Shown piece after piece: positions 3,956 to 33,890 of a DNA stretch of 37,574 nt. The translations under genes and the position numbers were made by a program. Positions within the stretch are counted from its first letter, which is position 1; each line of letters starts with the position of its first letter. The notes under the pieces were generated by a model. The model worked only from the letters and a program-made list of their open reading frames with translations, was not told the DNA's origin and searched no databases. This DNA comes from Octopus bimaculoides (taxonomy: Eukaryota). The stretch spans positions 55,381,958 through 55,419,531 of the forward strand of contig NC_068985.1 of assembly GCF_001194135.2 (NCBI RefSeq). Reading direction: 5' to 3'.

Positions 3956-6900
3956 GAACTCAATATAGGCACTGTGCAAAATTTTGTCGTAAAGGTGATG
4001 TCTAGAGGTGAGCCAAAAAACTATTCTTTTAAGCTTGTTCTTTAAAACGCTTTCTAAAACCACCATGTCACCCAGAATTTGTGGTGTGGAAAACAAAAGA
4101 CATAATTTCTTCAATGTAATGTGGTGCAGGCATGGCTGTGTGGTTGAGCAGCTTTCTTGGTTTCAGGTTCAGTTTCACTACACAGCACCTTGGGCAAGTG
4201 TCTTCTGCTACAGCCCCAGGTCAACCAATGTCATATGAGTGAATTTGGTAGACAGAAATTATGTGGAAACCTGTGCATGTGTGTGTGTGTGTATGGTTAC
4301 TGGTGCTGGTTTGTTTAGGCTCCTGCAACTTTGTGGTTTTGCAAAGGAGATTGATAGAATAAGGCCCAGACTTAGATAAAAAAGAAATAAGTACTAGAGT
4401 TGATTTGCTTGACTGAACCCTTCAAAGTGGTGCTCCTGCATGGCCACAATTTAATGACTGGAATAGATAAATGGTAAAAGATTAAGTTTCTTGGATTGCT
4501 TCATGTACTGTCCTTGTCTGTGTAGCAGCTGTTGTATCTTCAACTGCAAGTACAGCTAAGAATTTACCATTTCTTGCATTGATTAAACCTGAGATGATTA
4601 TAACCAATTTTTCTGCTGGCTTACCTCTTCAATAATATAAAAGATTTTACTGCCAGTATGTCACTTTCTACAGCCCAGTGTTGACACACACCCTGTGAGT
4701 GGAATTGGTTTGATGAAAACTACATAGATACCCATCAGGTGGGTTGTACCTGTAATTCAAGAGGTACAGCCTTGTCACACACTATGTCACACAGATTCTG
4801 TTTGAGAATTAGATTAGGGGTACATATACTTATGAAATACTCAGCCACTTGTATGTTAAATGAGGAGCAGGTAATTCAGTTGATCAAATAGCTGAATCTT
4901 TATCATCGAATGACAGAGCTCTATCACCTGTATATTTAACACAGGCTCCAGTCTCTTTTGGCTTGGTTTCTATATCTGGATGCCTTTCCTAACACCAACT
5001 ACTCCACAGAGTGTACTGGGTGTCTTTTACGTGTCACTGGCATGGGTGCCTTTTACATGTCACCATGTCATCAGTACGAGTGCCTTTCATGTGTTGCCAG
5101 CACTGGCTAAGAGTTGTCAAGCAGTGGTGGCAGACAAATGTAAGCATGAAGACACACATACATACCAATGTACATATATATGACAGGCTTCTTTCAGTTT
5201 CCATTTACCAAATTCACTCATAAGGCTTTGGTTTATGCAGAGCTATAGCAGAGGACACTTGTCTAAGGTGTCATGCAGTGGGATTGAACCCAGAAGCATG
5301 TTGTTGAAAAACACACTTGTTACTACAAAGCATGCCTGCATCTAAGTATTTTGTTTTTTAATTTAGGGTATTTTAAAAGTTTTCATTATTAAAAATATGA
5401 GTCCCATTAAAAATCATAGATTATAAGGTGTGAACTGGCAGAATCATTAGCATGCTGGGCAAGATGTTTAGCTACATTTCGTCTGTCTTCACATTCTGAG
5501 TTCAAATTCTGTCAAGGTCGACTTTGCCTTCCATCCTTTTGGGGGTCGATAAAAGGAGTACCAGTTGAACATTGGAAGTGATGTAATTGACTTACTCCTC
5601 CCCAGAGGAGTGATTTAAAAAGATTTTGTGCTACTATTTCTAATGGGCTGAGAGAGCACATAGAAGTTCCCTTGTTGGTTTGATAAGATCCCTGCAGTAG
5701 GCTATGTTGTTATGATGGATATTAGATTAGAAAATAGGTTGAACAGTTAATTGATTAGTTTGATTATAGGTGAATGTGTAAGTTGGTCAAACAAATTGGA
5801 GTGGAGAGATAGAGTGTGTGTGTGTGTGTGCATGTTGATTGTGGATATGAATACAGCTGAAGGTATGGTATTAATACTTGGTACACAAGGCAACAGGAGA
5901 GAGAGAGAGAAGGGGGGGTGAGAAAAAAGATAGAGAGAGGGAGGAGATACAGGGATTTAGATGTAATGAGAAAGAGAGTGACAAATAGAAAAATGATAGA
6001 AAAAAGAGAGGGAGAGAAACATTAGATGTGGATGAGAGAGAGTGACGTAGATAAAAAGATAGAGATAGAAACAGGAAGATAAAGGTTAGAGATAAAGATA
6101 GGACAGGGAGAGGAAGAGAGAGAAAGAAAGAGGGGAAGAGAGAGAAAGAAAGAGGGAAAGGGAGAGAAAGAAAGAGGAAAGGGAGAGAAAAAGAAAATAA
6201 AGAAACGGTTGGAGAGATGAGTGATTTATGTTAATTTATGTACTTTTAATTAGGGAGTTAAGGAAAGGAACAGGAATTGTAGGAGAATATAAACAATAAT
6301 TGTCTGGATATAAATAAATAGGGGCAAAGTGATGGTTCATCACTTATTGATATGTTATTACTGTTGTTGTTATTTAGCCCTGGTGAAGGCACATGGCTAA
6401 GTGGTTAGGGTATTCAGCTTATGGTCATAATGTCATGAGTTCAATTCCCAGTGATGTGTTGCATCCTTGAGCAAGACACTTTATTTCCCGTTGCTCCAGT
6501 ACACTCAGCTGGCAAAAATGAGTAGTACTTGTGTTTCAAAGGACCAGCCTTAAAAATATAATAATTATAATAATGAAATTATTGTGTATAGTGCTCAGGT
6601 GCACTACAACTCATCTAAGGTGCATGTACAGTACATAGAATTATGTACAAAAGTCAGGAAAGTGAACAGTGTATGAGTGTCATGATATACATGTGTGCAT
6701 GTGTTTGGAGAGTGCAGGATATCAGGTGTAGTAGTTGTATGCTGTCAACTTAATGTGACAGTCCCCTGAAGGGAATAATACTACTGTTGGTTAGACCTAG
6801 GAAGCTGCACTGCTTCTTGTTGGCCTTGACACATTTCCTCTGTGTGTGTGTGTGTGTGCCGGTGGTACGTGAAAAACANNNNNNNNNNTTCTTGTTGGCC

Positions 6901-12308: not shown

Positions 12309-13558
12309 GAGGGTGGGCTGAAAAGTTCATAGGCTGGCTATGTAAGAGTGATGCTAGAGTTATGAAGTTTTGCATGCATTAATTTCAACTCTTCTTATTA
12401 ATAATTGCATTGTTTCATTCCAGATAAACGGATATTTGACTGTTTAAAGAAGACTTCTGTAGTAAGTAGTAGTGGCTTCTCTTGAAAATAGGTAAAATTT
12501 GGCAGCATTAGTGTTATCAAGTACCTGCTGAAAAAGGATTTATCCCCAGACAACATTCATACTGACATAGTTGCTACATTAAGGGATGACACTCCAGCTT
12601 TATCAACAGTGCAATAATGGTCAGCTGAATTCGGAGGGGAAGGGAGAGTCTTGAAGATGATCCATTGTCTGGATGTCCAGCAACTGCCACCACCAAGAAA
12701 AACATTGATTGTGTTCACCACATGGTGATGGATGACAGGCTATTGACTATAAATTGAACAGCCAATGCTATTGACATATCCTATGAGAGAGTTGAGAATA
12801 TTCTGCACAATGAACTTGGTGGGATGACGGTTTCTGCTTGGTGGGTGCCACATCTTCTGAGACCTGATAAAAAATGCATCAGGCTGATCACATCACAGGA
12901 AAATCTGACATTGTTGGAGGCAGATCCAGCTGGTTTCCTTGAATGTTTCCTGAGCCAGGATGTGTGCTGGATTCATCACTTGGAGCTAGACCTGAAAAGG
13001 AGATCCATGTAGTGGAAATGCCCCTCCTCACCTACTCCAAATAAGGTCAAGGTTGTTCCTTCTGCAGAGAAGATGATGGCCTTAGTTTTTTGGAATGTAA
13101 GAGGCATTGTGTTTATTGGATATTTTAAGAGAGCTATGCCATCAATGGAGAGTATGATGCCAATTTGCTGAGGCAGTTACCAAAGGCTATCAAGACTAAA
13201 TGTGCAAGAAATCTGATGAAGGGGCCTTGCTACATCAGGACAATGCTCCAGTATACAATGTCCTTCATTTCAATGGCTGCTGTGCATGACTCACACTTTG
13301 AACAGGTTGATCACCCTCCCTATTCTCCTAATTTGGCTCCATCTGACTATCAGCTGTTCACCAAGATGAAAAACCATTTGCTGCAAACCAGCACCACAGT
13401 GATGATGACATCATATCTGCTGTTGATGACTTTTCTGACCAACTGGATGAAAGCTTCATCACCAATGGGATCCAAGCCCTGCAACACTGATGGAAGAAGT
13501 GTGGGACTATGTTGAAAAATAAACCTCATTTGGTCACATTCTTTTCAGCTGGCCCACA
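12309..13558 (+). mobile_element. Near full-length dead mariner (DD34D-type); transposase pseudogene ~12488-13522
   Basis: Left end GAGGGTGGGCTGAAAAGTTC; motifs WWVPHLL, HQDNAP, HPPYSPNLAPSDYQLF, GDYVEK*; several stops and frameshifts; right end partly deleted. Confidence 0.92.
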
Positions 13559-13823
13559 TATATTTATTTATATAGATACATACATATATACACATACATA
13601 CATACATATATATATATATATAAATTCATTTAAATTCATATAAACAGTAGATTGCAATGTTTCACCAAAAGAAGAATAGTAATTGTCACTAAATGTGACT
13701 AGGGTGTTAAAAACCACCTAGAAATAAGAGCTTAAATGCTTTAATGCTGTAGTTAATGCACATGAATGGAAACACATACACTAATAGGAACCATAATTGT
13801 CTGAAAAATGTTGACTGAGAATT

Positions 13824-13872
13824 CTTAAGACTGTCGTCAGTTTTGACAATTTTGGTTGCCTTATCAGTTAAG
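13824..13872 (-). ncRNA. Degenerate type I hammerhead ribozyme motif (core mutated)
   Basis: - strand reads CTTAA CTGATAA GGCAA-ccaaaa-TTGTC AAAA CTG-acga-CAG TC TTAAG: perfect 5-bp stem I, stems II and III, GUC; two core G-to-A changes predict inactivity. Confidence 0.6.
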
Positions 13873-14179
13873 CCTGCTTGGTTTTCGGCTTTGCCCAGAC
13901 CTGTTTCTCTATTAATATTTATGTTTTTGTCATCCAAATTAATGGATGATTTAGTGATTCACTAATGTGTATACACAAAATTAATATAAACAGCAGGTTG
14001 CAATGTTTCACCAAAAAGGAGAATTATAATTGTCACTAAATGTGACTAGGGTGTTAAAAAAACATCTATATTGTTAGAAATAAGAGCTAAGATGCTCTAA
14101 TGTTGTAGTTAATGCACATGAATGAAAACATATACACGAACAGGGACCATAGTTGTCTGAAAAATGCTGACCGAGAATT

Positions 14180-14228
14180 CTTTAGACTGATGTCAGTTTC
14201 AGCAATTTTCGTTGCCTCATCAGCTAAC
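14180..14228 (-). ncRNA. Minimal type I hammerhead ribozyme motif with intact catalytic core
   Basis: - strand reads gttag CTGATGA GGCAA-cgaaaa-TTGCT GAAA CTG-acat-CAG TC taaag: CUGAUGA box, 5-bp stem II, GAAA box, short stem III, GUC triplet (predicted cleavage between 14185 and 14184). Stem I is imperfect in this copy. Confidence 0.75.
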
Positions 14229-14459
14229 TACAGCAATAGAGCATTTTAGGTCTAATATAAGAATATTAGGTTGTGAGTTCAATTCCTAGTAACACATTGT
14301 GTCCTTGACTAAGGCATTTTATTTCACATTGCTCCTGTCCACTCAGCTGGCAAAAATGAGTAGTATCTGTATTTCAAAGGACCAGCCTTGTCACCTTTTC
14401 TGTGTCACGCTGAACCTTCTTGAAAACTATATTAAGGGCACACGTATCTATACATATAT

Positions 14460-14497
<38 letters not shown>

Positions 14498-14589: not shown

Positions 14590-14975
14590 TGGTAAGGTGA
14601 TTTTACATCTGTTTTTAGCATATTAGGAATCCACTTTCCAAATGCAATGCTTCCCTTCTCTATTTGATAGTATGTCTCTGCATTAAGACTACCATCTCTT
14701 GACAGTGTGCTTCCAAGGTAAACAAAGGTGTCAATGACTTCTAACCTTGTTCTATTCACAAAAATATTTGGTTCAGAATATGTTTGTCATGACACAGGTG
14801 TAAACATTACTTTGGTTTTCCCGAGCCTAATTGTGAGTCCAAAATGTACACATGCAGTGGAAAATCTGTCCATTAAATGTTGCATGTCCCCTTCTGAGTG
14901 TGCCAACAAATCAGTATCATCAGCATAAAGTAATTCTCTAACAAATATTTTGAAAATCTTTACTTTGCAGTTAAT
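14590..14975 (-). mobile_element. RTE LINE reverse transcriptase fragment
   Basis: VRELLYADDTDLLAHSEGDMQHLMDRFSTACVHFGLTIRLGKTKVM contains the YADD motif; frameshifted continuation LEVIDTFVYLGSTLS. Confidence 0.9.
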
Positions 14976-15234: not shown

Positions 15235-16470
15235 ATAAACACTGAAAATGTGCAGAAAACAGCTTCTGTCACATGCCAGGGGGAAAAACTAGAAGTAGTT
15301 GATAGCTTCCACTACCTAGGTGACCAAGTCAGTAGCGGGGTGGATGCTCTGAGAGTGTAGCTACTAGAATAAGAATAGCCTGGGCAAAGTTTAGAGAGCT
15401 CCTACCTCTGCTAGTGACAAAGGGCCTCTCGCTCAGAGTAAAAGGTAGACTGAATGATGCATGTGTGCAAACAGCCATGCTAAATGACAGTGAAACATGG
15501 GCTGTGACTGCTGAGGATATGCGTAAGCTTACAAGAAATGAAGCTAGTATGCTCCGCTGGATGTGTAATGTCAGTGTGCATACACGACAGAGTGTAAGCA
15601 CCCTGAGAGAAAAGTTGGATTTAAGAAGCATCAGATGTGATGTGCAAGAGAGACGACTGTGCTGGTATAGTCATGTGTTGCAAATGGATGAGGACAACTG
15701 TGTCACACCTTAGCAGTAGAGGGAACTTGTGGAAGAGGTAGACCCAGGAAAATCTGGGATGAGGTGGTGAAGCACAACCTTTGAATGTTGGGCCTCACGG
15801 AAGTGATGACGAGTGACGGAGACCTTTGGAGATATGCTGTGCTTAAGAAGACCCGGTAAGCCAAATGTGACCATAACCATGGCCTATGCCAGTGCAGCAT
15901 AACCAGCTCATTTAAGAGTACCCTTCAATCATTGGGCAATAAACTGTGCTTGCGAAAACCTGTTGAGTCAAGTGAAATCATTGCCGTGGTCGATGCCAGT
16001 ACTGCCTGACTGGCACCCGTGCTGGTGGCATGTAAAAAGCACAATTTGAGCATGGTCGATACCAGAGCTGCCTGAATTGTCCCATGCCGGTGGCATGTAA
16101 AAAGAACCATTTGAGCATGGTTGAAGCCAGTGCCGCTGGACTGGCTCCTGTGTTGTTGGCACATAAAAAGTACCATTCGAGTGTGGTCGAATGTGACTGC
16201 CTGACTGGCTCCTATGCTGGTGGCACATAAAAAGCACCATTCAAGTGTTGTCAATGCTCAGTACTACCTAACTGGCTCTCGTGCCGGTGGTGCATAAAAT
16301 GCACCCACCATACTCTCAGAGTGTTTGGTGTTAGGAAGGGCATCCAGCTGTAGAAAACTTGCCAGATCAGATTGGAGCCCAGTACAGCCTTCTGGCTTGG
16401 CAGTTCTCAGTCAAACTGTCCAACCCATGCCAGCATGGAAAGCAGATGTTAAATGACGATGATGATGATG
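15235..16470 (+). mobile_element. 5'-truncated RTE LINE with tandem-repeat 3' UTR and (GAT)n tail
   Basis: LEVVDSFHYLGDQV, RVKGRLNDACVQTAMLNDSETWAV, MLRWMC, GRGRPRKIWDEVV motifs; five ~65-bp units; ends GTTAAATGACGATGATGATG. Confidence 0.9.
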
Positions 16471-18745: not shown

Positions 18746-19117
18746 GTGGAGGCGCAATGGCCCAGTGGTTAGGGCAGCGAACTCGCAGTCATAGGATCGC
18801 GGTTTCGATTCCCAGACCGGGTGTTTATTGAGCTAAAACACGTAAAGCTCCACGAGGCTCCGGCAGGGGATGGTGGCGAACCCTGCTGCATTCTTTCACC
18901 ACAACTTTCTCTCACTCTTACTTCCTGTTTCTGTTGTACCTGTATTTCAAAGGGTCAGCTTTGTCACACTGTGTCACGCTGAATATCCCCGAGAACTATG
19001 TTAAGGGTACACGTGTCTGTGGAGTGCTCAGCCACTTGCACGTTAATTTCACGAGCAGGCTGTTCCGTTGATCAGATCAACTGGAACCCTCGACGTCTTA
19101 AGCGACGGAGTGCCAAC
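18746..19117 (+). mobile_element. Near full-length tRNA-derived SINE (family A); partial copies at 972-1104(-), ~4700-4950(+), 6384-6550(+), 14262-14450(+), 37508-37574(-)
   Basis: A-box TGGCCCAGTGGTTAGG and B-box GGTTTCGATTCCC; shared body GCCTTGTCACACT...GTCACGCTGAA and tail GACGGAGTGCC. Confidence 0.88.
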
Positions 19118-19457
19118 TGATTAGATATCAATATTTATTGACAATTGTAACAACAATAATGGCAATAACGGTCATAGAATCAGTATATGTTCCACCCCCA
19201 TCACCTCTGTCACATGTATCAGCCACAAGAACTGCATCAGCAGCAGCACTGTATGCTCCGCCTGGTACATATATTGACAACAACAAGAGCAGCAGCAGCA
19301 ACAAGAGCAGCAGCAGCAACAACAGCAGTAGTAGGTACAACAGAAGCAGCAACAGTAGTTATTTGTCATTCTCATTATAAACACCCAATCTTCATACTTC
19401 ACTGCCAGAGAAACACCACCACCATCAAAACTATCACCACCACTGCCAAGTCCAGAT

Positions 19458-19512: not shown

Positions 19513-20214
19513 GTAAGTCATAAACTAGCTGTCATCTTGATTACATCCACCCACAATCACATGCACACACAAACACAAATATACACACATAGTTATATTT
19601 AGAAGGTATCCAACAATTGTAGAAATATTTCAAAACCATAATATAGGCACATATGGATATATCATCATCATCATCATTGTCATTGTTTTCACGTTTGTCT
19701 TTCGATGGTCAGACAGAATTTTGTCAATCAGACAAAGAAACAATAACACACACACACACACACATCTATCTATCTATCTATCTATCTATAGATAGATAGA
19801 TATACAGATAACAAGCTTCTTTCAGTTTCTCTCTACCAAATCGACTTACAAGGTTTGGTGAGCCTAAGGCTATAGCAGAAGACATCTGCCCAAAGGGTCA
19901 CATAGTGGAATTGTACCCAGAACCATGTGGTTGGAAGGCAAACTTCTAACCACACAGCCACACCTGTGTTTATACACTCAGACACACACACACACACAAA
20001 CACACACACACGTATGTATGTGTGTGTGTATCATCATCATGATCATCATCATTTAACGTCCGCTTTCCATGCTGGCATGGGTTGGACGGTTTGATTGAAA
20101 ACTAGTAAGCCAGGGAGCTGCACCAGGTTCCAATCTGATTTGACAAGGTCTCTATGGCTGGATGCCCTTCCTAACATCAACAACTCCAAGAGTGTAGTGG
20201 GTGTTCCTCATGCC

Positions 20215-21141
20215 ATTCAGTAACAGCTGTGTGAATTGGTGCATTATCACTCTGAAAGGTTGCGTTTCTCTCCAGAAACAGTTTCGCAACCATAGAATGA
20301 ATTTGATCAGATAAAATGCTTAAATAGTTTTGACTATCAATTCTGCCAAGATTTAGACCCTCCCCCCCGCCAGATCATCACAGATCCTCCTCTATGTTTA
20401 ACAGTTGGAAGAAGGCAGTCTGGGTCAAATGCTTCTTTTAGCTGTCTCCACATGTACACCCAACCGGTGGTCAGAAATAAGGTAAAGGGCGACTCGTCTG
20501 AGAAAATAACATTCTTCCACTGCTCTAGAAACCAATTTTGTAGGTTTTTACTTTACTCTAAATGCTTTGCAACGTTTGTTTTTGAAAGTAGTGGTTTTCT
20601 GATTGCAGCCCTCCCATGAAATCCGGTTTTATGCAGCTCCTGGTGAACAGTTTTTGTGGAAACTGGGTTCTCGAGGTGGTCATTAAGCTCTGCAGTAATT
20701 TTGGGAACTGTACATTTGTGATCCTTTCTAACAATTCGCGTAAGAGTCCAATGGTCCTTATCTGAAAGTTTTGGTTTTCTTCTTGAGTTTTGTTTTGATG
20801 AGGAGGTTTTTTCCTCTTTATCAAAGACTGTCATTACTTTCGAGACAGTACTTCTTAATACACCAAACATTTCGGCTGTTTTCGTTACACTAGCATCTGC
20901 CATATGAGCACCAACAATTTGACCTCTTTGAAAGTCCGATAAATCTGTCATTTTAATGAATTTTAATTACCTTTTTGTAATGATATCTGAAAAGAAACAG
21001 CAATTTTAGCAAAACATATTAAGCAACACCAATAATAGATTAAAAAAACATTAAAATAAACATGCTTTTCACAGTTTTATAGATATTTTAAAATTATGAT
21101 GCTATGATGATAGGTGTTTCCATTATTTTGTCCAACCCCTG
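20215..21141 (-). mobile_element. Truncated Tc1-like (DD34E) transposon
   Basis: TA|CAGGGGTTGGACAAAATAATGGAAACAC left end at 21141; ORF 20951-20553 MTDLSDFQRGQIVGAHMADASVTKTA... continues with VIFSDES, TVKHRGGSVMIW and FQSDNAPIH. Confidence 0.9.
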
Positions 21142-21369
21142 TATACACAAGAGTGTATGCAAAACTGTTCTACTTTTGTTTTTCATTCCCATTTCTACAA
21201 CAATAAAGATACAGCTAACCATTTTATCTGCGGAGTGTATATTTGTAAATATGATTTTATGTATGTTCCAAACACACACATGTATATGTGTGTGTGTGTA
21301 TATGTATGTATTTGGATGCCTGGGTGCAAGCACACACACACACACACACATGCAGAGCAATATACTATA

Positions 21370-27297: not shown

Positions 27298-28211
27298 CTC
27301 ACTCTGCTAGCAATGTGCACCAAAGGAGAACAGAGATCAATGATCTGATTTCTCTGGTCAGAAGGTGTGTTAGGGGCTGACATTCATTGCAGACTTTCAG
27401 TACAATATGGGGTCAGCACTCTGCCACTTAGAGGTGTGTATGAGTGGATTGAGAAGTTTAAAAGACAAACATGAAGCACAAAGCGAGAGCAAGACATCCA
27501 TCAAACTCCACCACTGATGTAAGAATCAACAAACCTGAGAGGTGGTTCTGGTGAACAAACGAGTAACCATCAATGAAGTGGTATGTTATTTGCATATTAG
27601 TCACAGTTCTGCATACAAAATCATCCATGACAAGCTTTGCTTCTGTAAAGTCTGTGTGAGGTGGGTGCCATGAGAGATTACTGAATCGCACAGTCATGTG
27701 GAGATCTGTCAATGCTTACTCAGCTGCTGCAATGATGAAGGTAAAGCTTTTTTGGAGAGAATAGTCGCAGGAGATGAGCCTGGGGTCCATCACTTTGAAC
27801 CAGAATCCTAAAGGCAATGTATGGAGTGGAAACACCTGAAATTGCCAGCGAAGAAATTCCACAGAAAAATTGATGCCAACTGTTTTTTGAGATGCAAAAG
27901 GGCCTATACTGGAGCTTTACCTGGAAAGGGGGTCTAGAGTCACTTGTGTAGGCTACAGTGAAATGTTGGTCAGCAAACTGAAATTAGCAATTCACACTAA
28001 ACACAGAGGTCTATTGTCAAAGCAAGTGTCATTGTTGCATGACAGTGCATGCCCACAAGGTCGTCAATTTGCTATGGATGAAGAAGTGCAGCAAGTACTG
28101 CATAAATGGCCACGCAATCAGCCCCAAACCTTCTTCTCTGATGGAATAAGCAAGCTTGTGGAGGACTGGAAAAAGTGCATTGAAAAACAAGGAGACTATG
28201 TTGAAAAATAA
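27298..28211 (+). mobile_element. Decayed mariner transposase in intron 2 of the + strand gene
   Basis: KVCVRWVP, IVAGDEPGVHHFEPES, LLHDSACP and WKKCIEKQGDYVEK* motifs; internal deletion. Confidence 0.88.
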
Positions 28212-33139: not shown

Positions 33140-33605
33140 ATTACTGGTCCCCATTGTTTGGTCATGAATGACATGGGATTGCACCTAGAAAGTTCCCCTC
33201 CTAGGCACAAGTCTGGGCAAGGTTGTTTATGGAAGTCCAGCAGTCACCCATGCATACCAGCCTACCCTCTCCATGCCACTGATGTTATCCAAGGGAAAGG
33301 CAAAGGCCTATATAGCTTGGCACCAGTGATGCTGCAACTCATTTCCACAGCTGAGCTAACTGGAGCAACATGAAATAAAGTCTTGCTCAAGAACACAACC
33401 TCACTTGGTCACGTTCCATGAGAGTATCTTGGGTGGCCTATGAATTTTTCAGCTGATCCTTGTATATACCACTATCTTTGTCTTTTTTCCTGCTAGTCCC
33501 ACTCACCCTTATATAACGTGGGATGACCATACAGCCTGGGAATTGAACTCACTATCTCATGATTGTGAGCCCAACGCTCTAACAACTGAGCCATGCGCCT
33601 TCACT
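33140..33605 (-). mobile_element. SINE family E; + strand copy at ~26865-27090
   Basis: Shared TTGCTCCAGTTCACTCAGCTG..GAAATGAGTTG...CCAAGCT.TAT.GGCCTTTGC..TT.CCTTGGATAACATCAGTGGC. Confidence 0.75.
33399..33462 (+). mobile_element. Solo right end of the same mariner family, inside a - strand SINE
   Basis: TTGGTCAC...GCCTATGAATTTTTCAGC is the reverse complement of the left end at 12309; followed by TA. Confidence 0.6.
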
Positions 33606-33890
33606 TTGTATACCCAGTAGCTTCCTCCTGTTGTTATCATTAATTCTGTTTTGTCTGTAGACTTCAACTCCAACATAAATTGGTAGAAAGTACCAATTTG
33701 ATCCTGAGTTGTCAATACAACTGATTTTCTTTGGTTCTTTTTGTCAACAACCACACAAACCATTCCATTTGACCACGTCTGGTAATTCCCCAAACTCATC
33801 GGACTCATTACAGCACATCACTGAATTATTAGTTAATCTTAACAATGCAATAAACTAAACGACACATTCAATAACAATTGCCATGGTGTA

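Follow-up and report, generated by a model that had tools for sequence, protein, structure and literature searches.

Two hammerhead-like motifs lie on the minus strand of a 37,574-nucleotide (nt) stretch of the Octopus bimaculoides genome (NCBI RefSeq assembly GCF_001194135.2, contig NC_068985.1, positions 55,381,958 to 55,419,531 of the forward strand). This whole stretch is referred to as the window, and positions are counted from its first letter. The explanation that we favor, with moderate confidence, is that the two motifs descend from a genuine type I hammerhead, now dead, that was carried by a short, non-autonomous octopod retroelement, two decayed units of which survive here. What we see at present is a single inactive relic among transposons, and nothing hints that it functions today; the ancestral sequence, the circular RNA, the dimeric action and the mobilising family that are part of the proposal are things that we infer.

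Anatomy of the two motifs

Copy A of the motif (14180-14228) has an intact core: as had been claimed in a first-pass annotation of this DNA, it keeps CUGAUGA, GAAA and GUC. Read on the minus strand from 14228 to 14180, its sequence is GUUAG-CUGAUGA-GGCAA-CGAAAA-UUGCU-GAAA-CUG-ACAU-CAG-U-C-UAAAG, which places CUGAUGA at 14223-14217, GAAA at 14200-14197, U at 14186 and C17 at 14185. Helix II, GGCAA (14216-14212) with UUGCU (14205-14201), has 5 base pairs (bp), with G.U at 10.1-11.1; helix III, A-CUG (14197-14194) with CAG-U (14189-14186), has 4 bp and the loop ACAU. Helix I is the deficient element of copy A: its 5' strand GUUAG (14228-14224) and 3' strand UAAAG (14184-14180) form 3 of 5 possible pairs, just 1 of which is contiguous with the core.

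Copy B (13824-13872, minus strand) has helices I-III all paired and a core with two substitutions. Its sequence, from 13872 to 13824, is CUUAA-CUGAUAA-GGCAA-CCAAAA-UUGUC-AAAA-CUG-ACGA-CAG-U-C-UUAAG. All 5 pairs of helix I form (CUUAA, 13872-13868, with UUAAG, 13828-13824), helix II is GGCAA/UUGUC with G10.1-C11.1, helix III is CUG/CAG, and U13830 and C13829 are in place. The core defects are G8A at 13862, in CUGAUAA (13867-13861), and G12A at 13844, in AAAA (13844-13841); the perfect stem I and the two core G-to-A changes that had been described for this copy are thus both there. G12 is the general base of hammerhead catalysis and the 2'-OH of G8 is its proposed general acid (PMC6155905), and it is for this reason that the pair of substitutions in copy B is taken to be inactivating. 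The CUGAU boxes of the two copies are on the same strand at a spacing of 356 nt, exactly as first noted. In the alignment of the two sequences, 26 of the 28 helix cells are paired, as against 21-39% when the 3' partners are slid out of register.

Probable descent from a type I hammerhead

How readily might such a motif arise by chance? A custom type I descriptor (CUGANGA, helix II of at least 4 bp, GAAA, helix III of at least 3 bp including A15.1-U16.1, and H17) recovers copy A as its sole match on both strands of the window and of three further loci, so that this check, which had been proposed along with the annotation, comes out in its favor. Measured on 1.95 Gb of random sequence with matching base composition, the chance expectation is 8.5e-3 per window for this loose descriptor and 1.3e-3 per window for helices as good as those of copy A. 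For the canonical form (CUGAUGAG...Y-GAAAC...GUC, with helix II of 5 bp and helix III of 4 bp) it falls to 1.4-2.2e-6 per window. The features that the canonical form adds (U7, G10.1 facing a pyrimidine at 11.1, C15.2-G16.2, and GUC) are present in the Rfam consensus; they were picked after the motif had been seen, though they are the textbook ones. Applied to the looser case, the same arithmetic predicts 22 matches, and 34 were observed. For an entire genome, whose size we take to be 2.7 Gb, the canonical form would be expected by chance 0.1-0.2 times under a model of independent and identically distributed bases.

Random sequence is of course not octopod DNA. When 1,200 descriptors with permuted cores were run as decoys on 158 kb of octopod DNA, they matched 1.5-fold (loose) to 3-fold (strict) above the random expectation; because the inflation is no greater than this, the structure of the genome does not rescue a chance reading. 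The canonical motif being so improbable by chance (~2e-6 per window), descent of the motif in copies A and B from a genuine type I hammerhead is favored, and, on the strength of the sequence, we regard it as probable. In this respect the original proposal is supported.

The inferred ancestral motif and its folding

The window is strongly depleted in CpG (observed/expected 0.28), with TG at 1.40 and CA at 1.36; across its whole length this combination of CpG depletion with TG and CA excess implies heavy, methylation-driven CpG decay. At positions 11.1-12, the junction of helix II with GAAA, copy A has UG and copy B has CA, so the suggestion that this junction decayed in opposite CpG directions is supported; given the strength of the depletion, the difference points to an ancestral CG (C11.1, G12). 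In loop 3, copy A has CA and copy B has CG; the same decay, with the next base, U, taken from copy A, makes the ancestral loop ACGU. The ancestor would then have read CUUAA-CUGAUGA-GGCAA(loop)UUGCC-GAAA-CUG-ACGU-CAG-UC-UUAAG. Its helix III and loop, ACUGACGUCAGU, form a perfect 12-nt palindrome. A near-palindromic stem III had been claimed: the perfect palindrome belongs to the reconstructed ancestor, whereas the loops of the extant copies, ACAU in A and ACGA in B, are non-palindromic. The core of the ancestral helix III, TGACGTCA (14187-14196 and 13831-13840), is also the consensus cAMP-response element, which may be coincidence.

As monomers, both copy A (minimum of -11.1 kcal/mol versus -1.2 kcal/mol for the hammerhead fold) and the inferred ancestor (-12.4 versus -8.4 kcal/mol) have minima in which CUGAUG pairs with CAUCAG (copy A) or CGUCAG (ancestor). 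An imperfect palindrome of 40 nt centered on helix III (14171-14211), whose score is reached by 0 of 500 shuffled sequences, competes with the hammerhead fold. For the homodimer of the ancestor, a reconstructed rather than an extant sequence, the computed minimum-energy fold is a double hammerhead with a 12-bp helix III, at -32.5 kcal/mol versus 2 x -12.4 kcal/mol for two monomers. A dimer mode has been described for metazoan type I hammerheads and for those of Penelope-like elements (PMC4209133, PMC7229834), and the modeled homodimer fits it.

These computations suggest how the element might have worked. The ancestral monomer would misfold, with CUGAUG paired to CGUCAG; two copies on one transcript could pair through their palindromic helices III to make a double hammerhead, each half of which would cut after GUC and so release a monomer of ~350 nt. 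A reverse transcriptase (RT) supplied in trans could copy this monomer back once it had been circularised. Cleavage is expected of neither present-day copy: helix I is missing from A, which is predicted to fold otherwise, and B is without G8 and G12.

The repeat units and their SINE-derived module

Each motif stands at the 5' edge of a longer repeat. Unit A (250 nt, 13978-14227) and unit B (240 nt, 13632-13871) lie on the minus strand in direct orientation, 346-356 nt apart, with a GC content of 33%. They are 87.6% identical over aligned bases (21 transitions and 9 transversions) and 84-88% across alignments, in agreement with the ~85% first given. Each unit consists of ~105 nt of unique 5' sequence that includes the motif, a module derived from a short interspersed element (SINE), and an AT-rich tail. 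In the favored reading, each copy is a unit of ~245 nt with the hammerhead at its 5' edge, then a linker of ~55 nt, an old SINE module derived from transfer RNA (tRNA) on the same strand, and the AT-rich tail. A (TA)n/(TACA)n microsatellite (13558-13632) lies directly 3' of unit B.

The notion of a tandem with a 356-nt monomer is not borne out by the repeat structure. The homology spans just 240-250 nt of each 346-356-nt period, and the 106-nt spacer between the units (13872-13977) is unique: neither the DNA upstream of A, nor the adjacent SINE, nor the DNA past the tail of that SINE contains a homologue. Tandem Repeats Finder detects no period near 350. On sequence grounds the locus would be at best a truncated dimer of ~1.7 units, not a clean head-to-tail tandem.

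From position 106 to position 194, each unit shows homology to a tRNA-derived SINE head (z=7.6 and 6.5 relative to shuffled sequences). The module occupies 14034-14122 in unit A (minus strand; z=7.6), where it has a degenerate B box and a T7 run, and 13677-13766 in unit B (minus strand; z=6.5). A GTCAC-N5-GTGAC hairpin, correctly described as conserved in both copies, is part of this module and lies inside a 34-nt block that is identical in A and B. Abutting unit A is an inverted, plus-strand tRNA-derived SINE (14228-14494) with the B box GAGTTCAATTCC at 14275-14286 and a (TA)n tail at 14445-14494; it is of the same subfamily as the adjacent module, in the opposite orientation, and the same SINE family occurs at 6352-6560, at 33517-33640 and in O. 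vulgaris. The two form a long imperfect inverted repeat, 14080-14111 with 14225-14256 (84% complementary) and 14034-14050 with 14285-14301, for which the fold z-score is -4.1.

Some further observations on these SINEs may be set down here. The two heads of one subfamily stand head to head (14034-14111 and 14225-14301) around a 113-nt spacer. This head type turned up at no other place in 79 kb of octopod DNA (the window together with 41 kb of octopus loci, L001 from O. vulgaris and L003 from O. sinensis, that were sampled through LINE and Tc1 protein searches, LINE standing for long interspersed element), and a local inverted duplication of the SINE head is for that reason possible. Immediately 3' of the B box, three related SINE sequences have hairpins in the same position but with different stems, GTCAC/GTGAC, ACAC/GTGT and GATG/CATC (sites 14032-14046, 13685-13699, 14291-14301 and 6455-6467), which looks like stem covariation within this octopod SINE family. 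A candidate target-site duplication of the plus-strand SINE (CAGCTAA versus CTGTTAA, 5/7) is too weak to use. A second and more abundant tRNA-derived SINE family, with B box GAGTTCAAATTC and ...GGTCGACTTTGCCTTTCATCC, is common to the window and O. vulgaris (plus-strand sites 5498, 16882 and 17501; L001 sites 570, 754 and 11957).

Two other identities for the unit were tried and set aside. It is not the 3' untranslated region of the adjacent LINE: the RT fragment of that LINE breaks off at ~14634, and the unit has no similarity to the LINE 3' end at 1880-2300. Nor does it look like a miniature inverted-repeat transposable element or another element of the terminal-inverted-repeat kind: no such repeats are discernible by eye.

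Objections and rival explanations

A number of findings weigh against the favored explanation and must be faced together. Rfam, whose hammerhead models had been put forward as a check, offers no usable call: nothing in the whole window reaches the gathering score, 1 kb searched at E<=10 yields no hammerhead (Hammerhead_1 included), and in 91-nt pieces copy A scores at best 13.6 bits, with Hammerhead_3, a model of another topology (threshold 48.5), while copy B scores nothing. The helices offer no compensatory changes: between A and B there are 0 two-sided changes and 3 one-sided ones, with pairing kept in all three, in a comparison of just two related copies. Between A and B the motif has diverged more than the remainder of the unit, with 39/49 positions identical (80%) versus 172/192 (90%; Fisher p=0.09), and would appear, from these counts, to be under no constraint since the copies separated. 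In the monomers of A and of the ancestor the probability of helix III is ~0, and the hammerhead fold is not favored. No further copy of the unit turns up in the 79 kb. Expression by RNA polymerase III (Pol III) seems doubtful: the B-box region of the unit reads GTTTTTTTAACACC and is degenerate, T5-T7 runs interrupt the unit at 14164-14160 and 14062-14056, and usable Pol III A and B boxes are accordingly wanting; ARAGORN finds no tRNA. Finally, it had been stated that the consensus of the two copies rebuilds a complete ribozyme. CpG logic supports C11.1 and G12 in the ancestor, whereas the states of G8 and of helix I have no polarisation with two copies, and the complete ribozyme is a best-of-two reconstruction only.

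Other searches were equally unproductive. A covariance model built from the two motifs and run unfiltered over the 79 kb found no additional copy, its match at 19111-19166 not being a hammerhead. A protein search with the spurious open reading frame (ORF) that spans the copies had no match, exact look-ups of two window ORFs returned no record, and literature full text, queried with sequence strings of the unit, its motif and the SINE, yielded nothing relevant. Metagenome scans with a 20-mer of the unit gave 0 matches and are uninformative, since a 22-mer of the abundant SINE also gave 0: there is no octopod DNA there.

Among the alternatives, the one that best withstands the evidence is that the motif is a chimeric look-alike produced by chance and that no ribozyme ever existed. 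Its 5' third would be the antisense of the 5' end of the plus-strand SINE, and the remainder would be palindrome-rich flank; copy B would be a local duplication of ~14 nt of SINE head, 92 nt and the old SINE. This reading implies a SINE subfamily with a 5' end containing GCCTCATCAG. The homology of the SINE head, anchored at TAACTACA (14225), may indeed reach left to ~14216, over the reverse complement of CUGAUGA, with p=0.03 when tested against the C/D-type consensus, built from three other heads, another point that tells against the ribozyme; in two other anchored tests, however, this leftward homology is weak (p=0.25 and 0.16). The homology between A and B stops at 14227, exactly where the SINE starts, the region is a nest of inverted repeats, and the reverse strand scores 20 bits with the two-motif covariance model; the want of Rfam support and the unexceptional conservation of the motif relative to the rest of the unit are also as a chimera would have them. 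What makes this explanation unlikely in our estimation is how much the flank would have to supply: a complement for helix II, Y-GAAAC, a hairpin and GUC, all at the right spacing, for which the chance is ~1.5e-6 per junction; the overall chance expectation of the motif is 0.1-0.5 per genome. In addition, copy B keeps its box without an adjacent SINE and has a perfect helix I.

A second alternative sees in the locus the remnants of Penelope-like pseudo-long terminal repeats (pseudo-LTRs), namely two partial tandem terminal repeats with hammerheads and an inverted, 5'-truncated copy beside the upstream one, all inserted at a (TA)n microsatellite. Hammerheads do occur in the pseudo-LTRs of Penelope-like elements, where a palindromic 15.2-16.2 with loop 3 is typical (PMC4209133), and these elements have been described as forming partial tandems, as having an inverted truncated copy next to them and as favoring (TA)n targets (PMC8557442); the octopus locus is bounded on either side by microsatellites and includes a related copy in inverted orientation. 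The details fit poorly. No nucleotide is inserted between A9 and 10.1; helix II is 5 bp long where 6-8 would be typical, and helix III 4 bp where 0-2 would be (PMC4209133). Among the long ORFs examined in the window none has RT with GIY-YIG, and the RT pieces are LINE-type only. What would be the inverted copy is an ordinary tRNA-derived SINE, found in O. vulgaris as well. We consider this explanation improbable.

That the pair is active today, cutting a host pre-mRNA or releasing a 356-nt circular RNA, can practically be discounted: the core of copy A is intact and the two motifs share a strand, but copy B is without G8 and G12, helix I is missing from copy A, whose stablest fold sequesters CUGAUG, the motif changes no more slowly than the DNA around it, and the scans of long ORFs detected no host exon. 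The earlier statement that an active copy would cut the pre-mRNA is without support.

Neighboring elements and the host-gene question

The surroundings of the two motifs are those of mobile DNA. Upstream of unit A, past the inverted SINE, the minus strand also carries a fragment of LINE-type RT (~14634-14950; RVT_1, E=2.4e-4), with YADD at ~14916-14927 and an end near 14634. The LINE protein recovered with the window's other LINE ORF aligns with it at its N-terminus. The assertion that no RT or GIY-YIG ORF is adjacent must therefore be divided: there is a neighboring RT fragment, of LINE type; a GIY-YIG or Penelope-like ORF did not appear among ORFs of at least 70 amino acids or in Pfam scans, which gave only LINE-type RT and Tc1 pieces and do not cover the six frames exhaustively. 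Other LINE-type RT fragments are at 1290-1880 and 15414-15713, both on the plus strand; the segment 1365-1603 has 89% DNA identity to a locus of O. vulgaris whose annotation is a hypothetical protein. A Tc1-like transposase (20202-21145, minus strand; HTH_Tnp_Tc3_2, E=1e-12) is 84-88% identical in DNA sequence to O. sinensis LOC118762572, a locus situated in an intron of a Peptidase_S28 gene. Altogether, the LINE, Tc1 and SINE sequences of the window match O. vulgaris and O. sinensis loci at 74-89%.

Two plus-strand ORFs, 13165-13540 and 27891-28208, have what we take to be a mariner-like C-terminal motif (HPPYSPNLAPSDYQLF; ...KKCIEKQGDYVEK); Pfam gives no match to either, even at E<=10. Many Tc1-like ORFs that are 65-77% identical to the window transposase occur in ENA ERZ21867824 (ctg64858l), a 'metagenome' assembly with contigs of up to 1.9 Mb that is without the octopod SINE and is not octopod, though apparently eukaryote. 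Five N gaps of 10-402 nt suggest that the window is part of a draft scaffold.

Placement of the pair in an intron of a minus-strand gene is a claim for which support was sought and not obtained: 18 long ORFs of the window were scanned against Pfam, and they contain no host-gene domain, nor any non-transposon domain at all.

Implications

Should copies elsewhere in the genome confirm the hammerhead relic, hammerhead-bearing retroelements would extend to cephalopods, and octopods would be the second lineage, after schistosomes, with a hammerhead fused to SINE-derived sequence, a fusion that would bear on the origin and the transcription of retrozymes; no octopus hammerhead or retrozyme is reported among the top-ranked matches of a literature search. 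A bolder proposal is that octopods carry an entire, as yet undescribed family of SINE-derived hammerhead retrozymes, a fusion of the SMalpha kind that spread by way of dimer-cleaved circular RNAs of ~350 nt, with the present locus as one decayed insertion. This we advance tentatively, as something with a real chance but with the balance on the other side. If the hammerhead family is real, the 5' ends of its copies would cluster at TTAACTGATGA.

Comparison with known hammerhead-bearing repeats

Metazoan non-LTR retrozymes are head-to-tail repeats of 150-450 bp with type I hammerheads and GC contents below 45-50% (Cervera and de la Pena 2020, PMC7229834); they exist in many genomic copies and generate linear and circular RNA (PMC7229834). 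The octopus locus resembles them in having a type I hammerhead in an AT-rich (33% GC), noncoding unit of a few hundred nt, with motifs ~350 nt apart. It differs in that there is no clean array, the 106-nt spacer being unrepeated, and no identifiable contact between loops 1 and 2; one copy has a dead core and the other lacks helix I, and a tRNA-SINE-derived module is present.

The minimal hammerheads of Penelope-like elements have an unpaired nucleotide between A9 and 10.1, a helix II of 6-8 bp and a conserved G10.1-C11.1 pair (Cervera and de la Pena 2014, PMC4209133). A short helix I (5 bp) is common to these and to the octopus motif, and the inferred ancestor would share with them G10.1-C11.1 (among the extant copies it is G-C in B and G.U in A), the palindromic helix III with its loop, and the dimer fold. 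Unlike them, the octopus motif has no bulge after A9, a helix II of 5 bp, a helix III of 4 bp and no Penelope-like ORF nearby.

The SMalpha and Sjalpha repeats of Schistosoma are described, in the account of Ferbeyre 1998 that is cited in PMC8490949, as joining a type I hammerhead and SINE-like sequence on one strand in a unit of ~335-350 nt. The octopus unit likewise joins a hammerhead and a tRNA/SINE-related module on one strand at a similar size, a likeness that goes as far as that description does. SMalpha carries Pol III A and B boxes. In the octopus unit, in contrast, the B box is degenerate and T5-T7 runs intervene.

The hammerheads of newt and salamander satellite 2 have a weak monomer fold and act as dimers through helix III in tandem transcripts (PMC7229834, PMC4209133). 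Here too the octopus monomer fold is predicted to be weak and the ancestral dimer fold to proceed through helix III; satellite 2, however, forms large, conserved and expressed arrays, and the octopus has one decayed locus. On the best reading, the element is a new member of the already known hammerhead-bearing repeats, with features that fit each of the published families in part.

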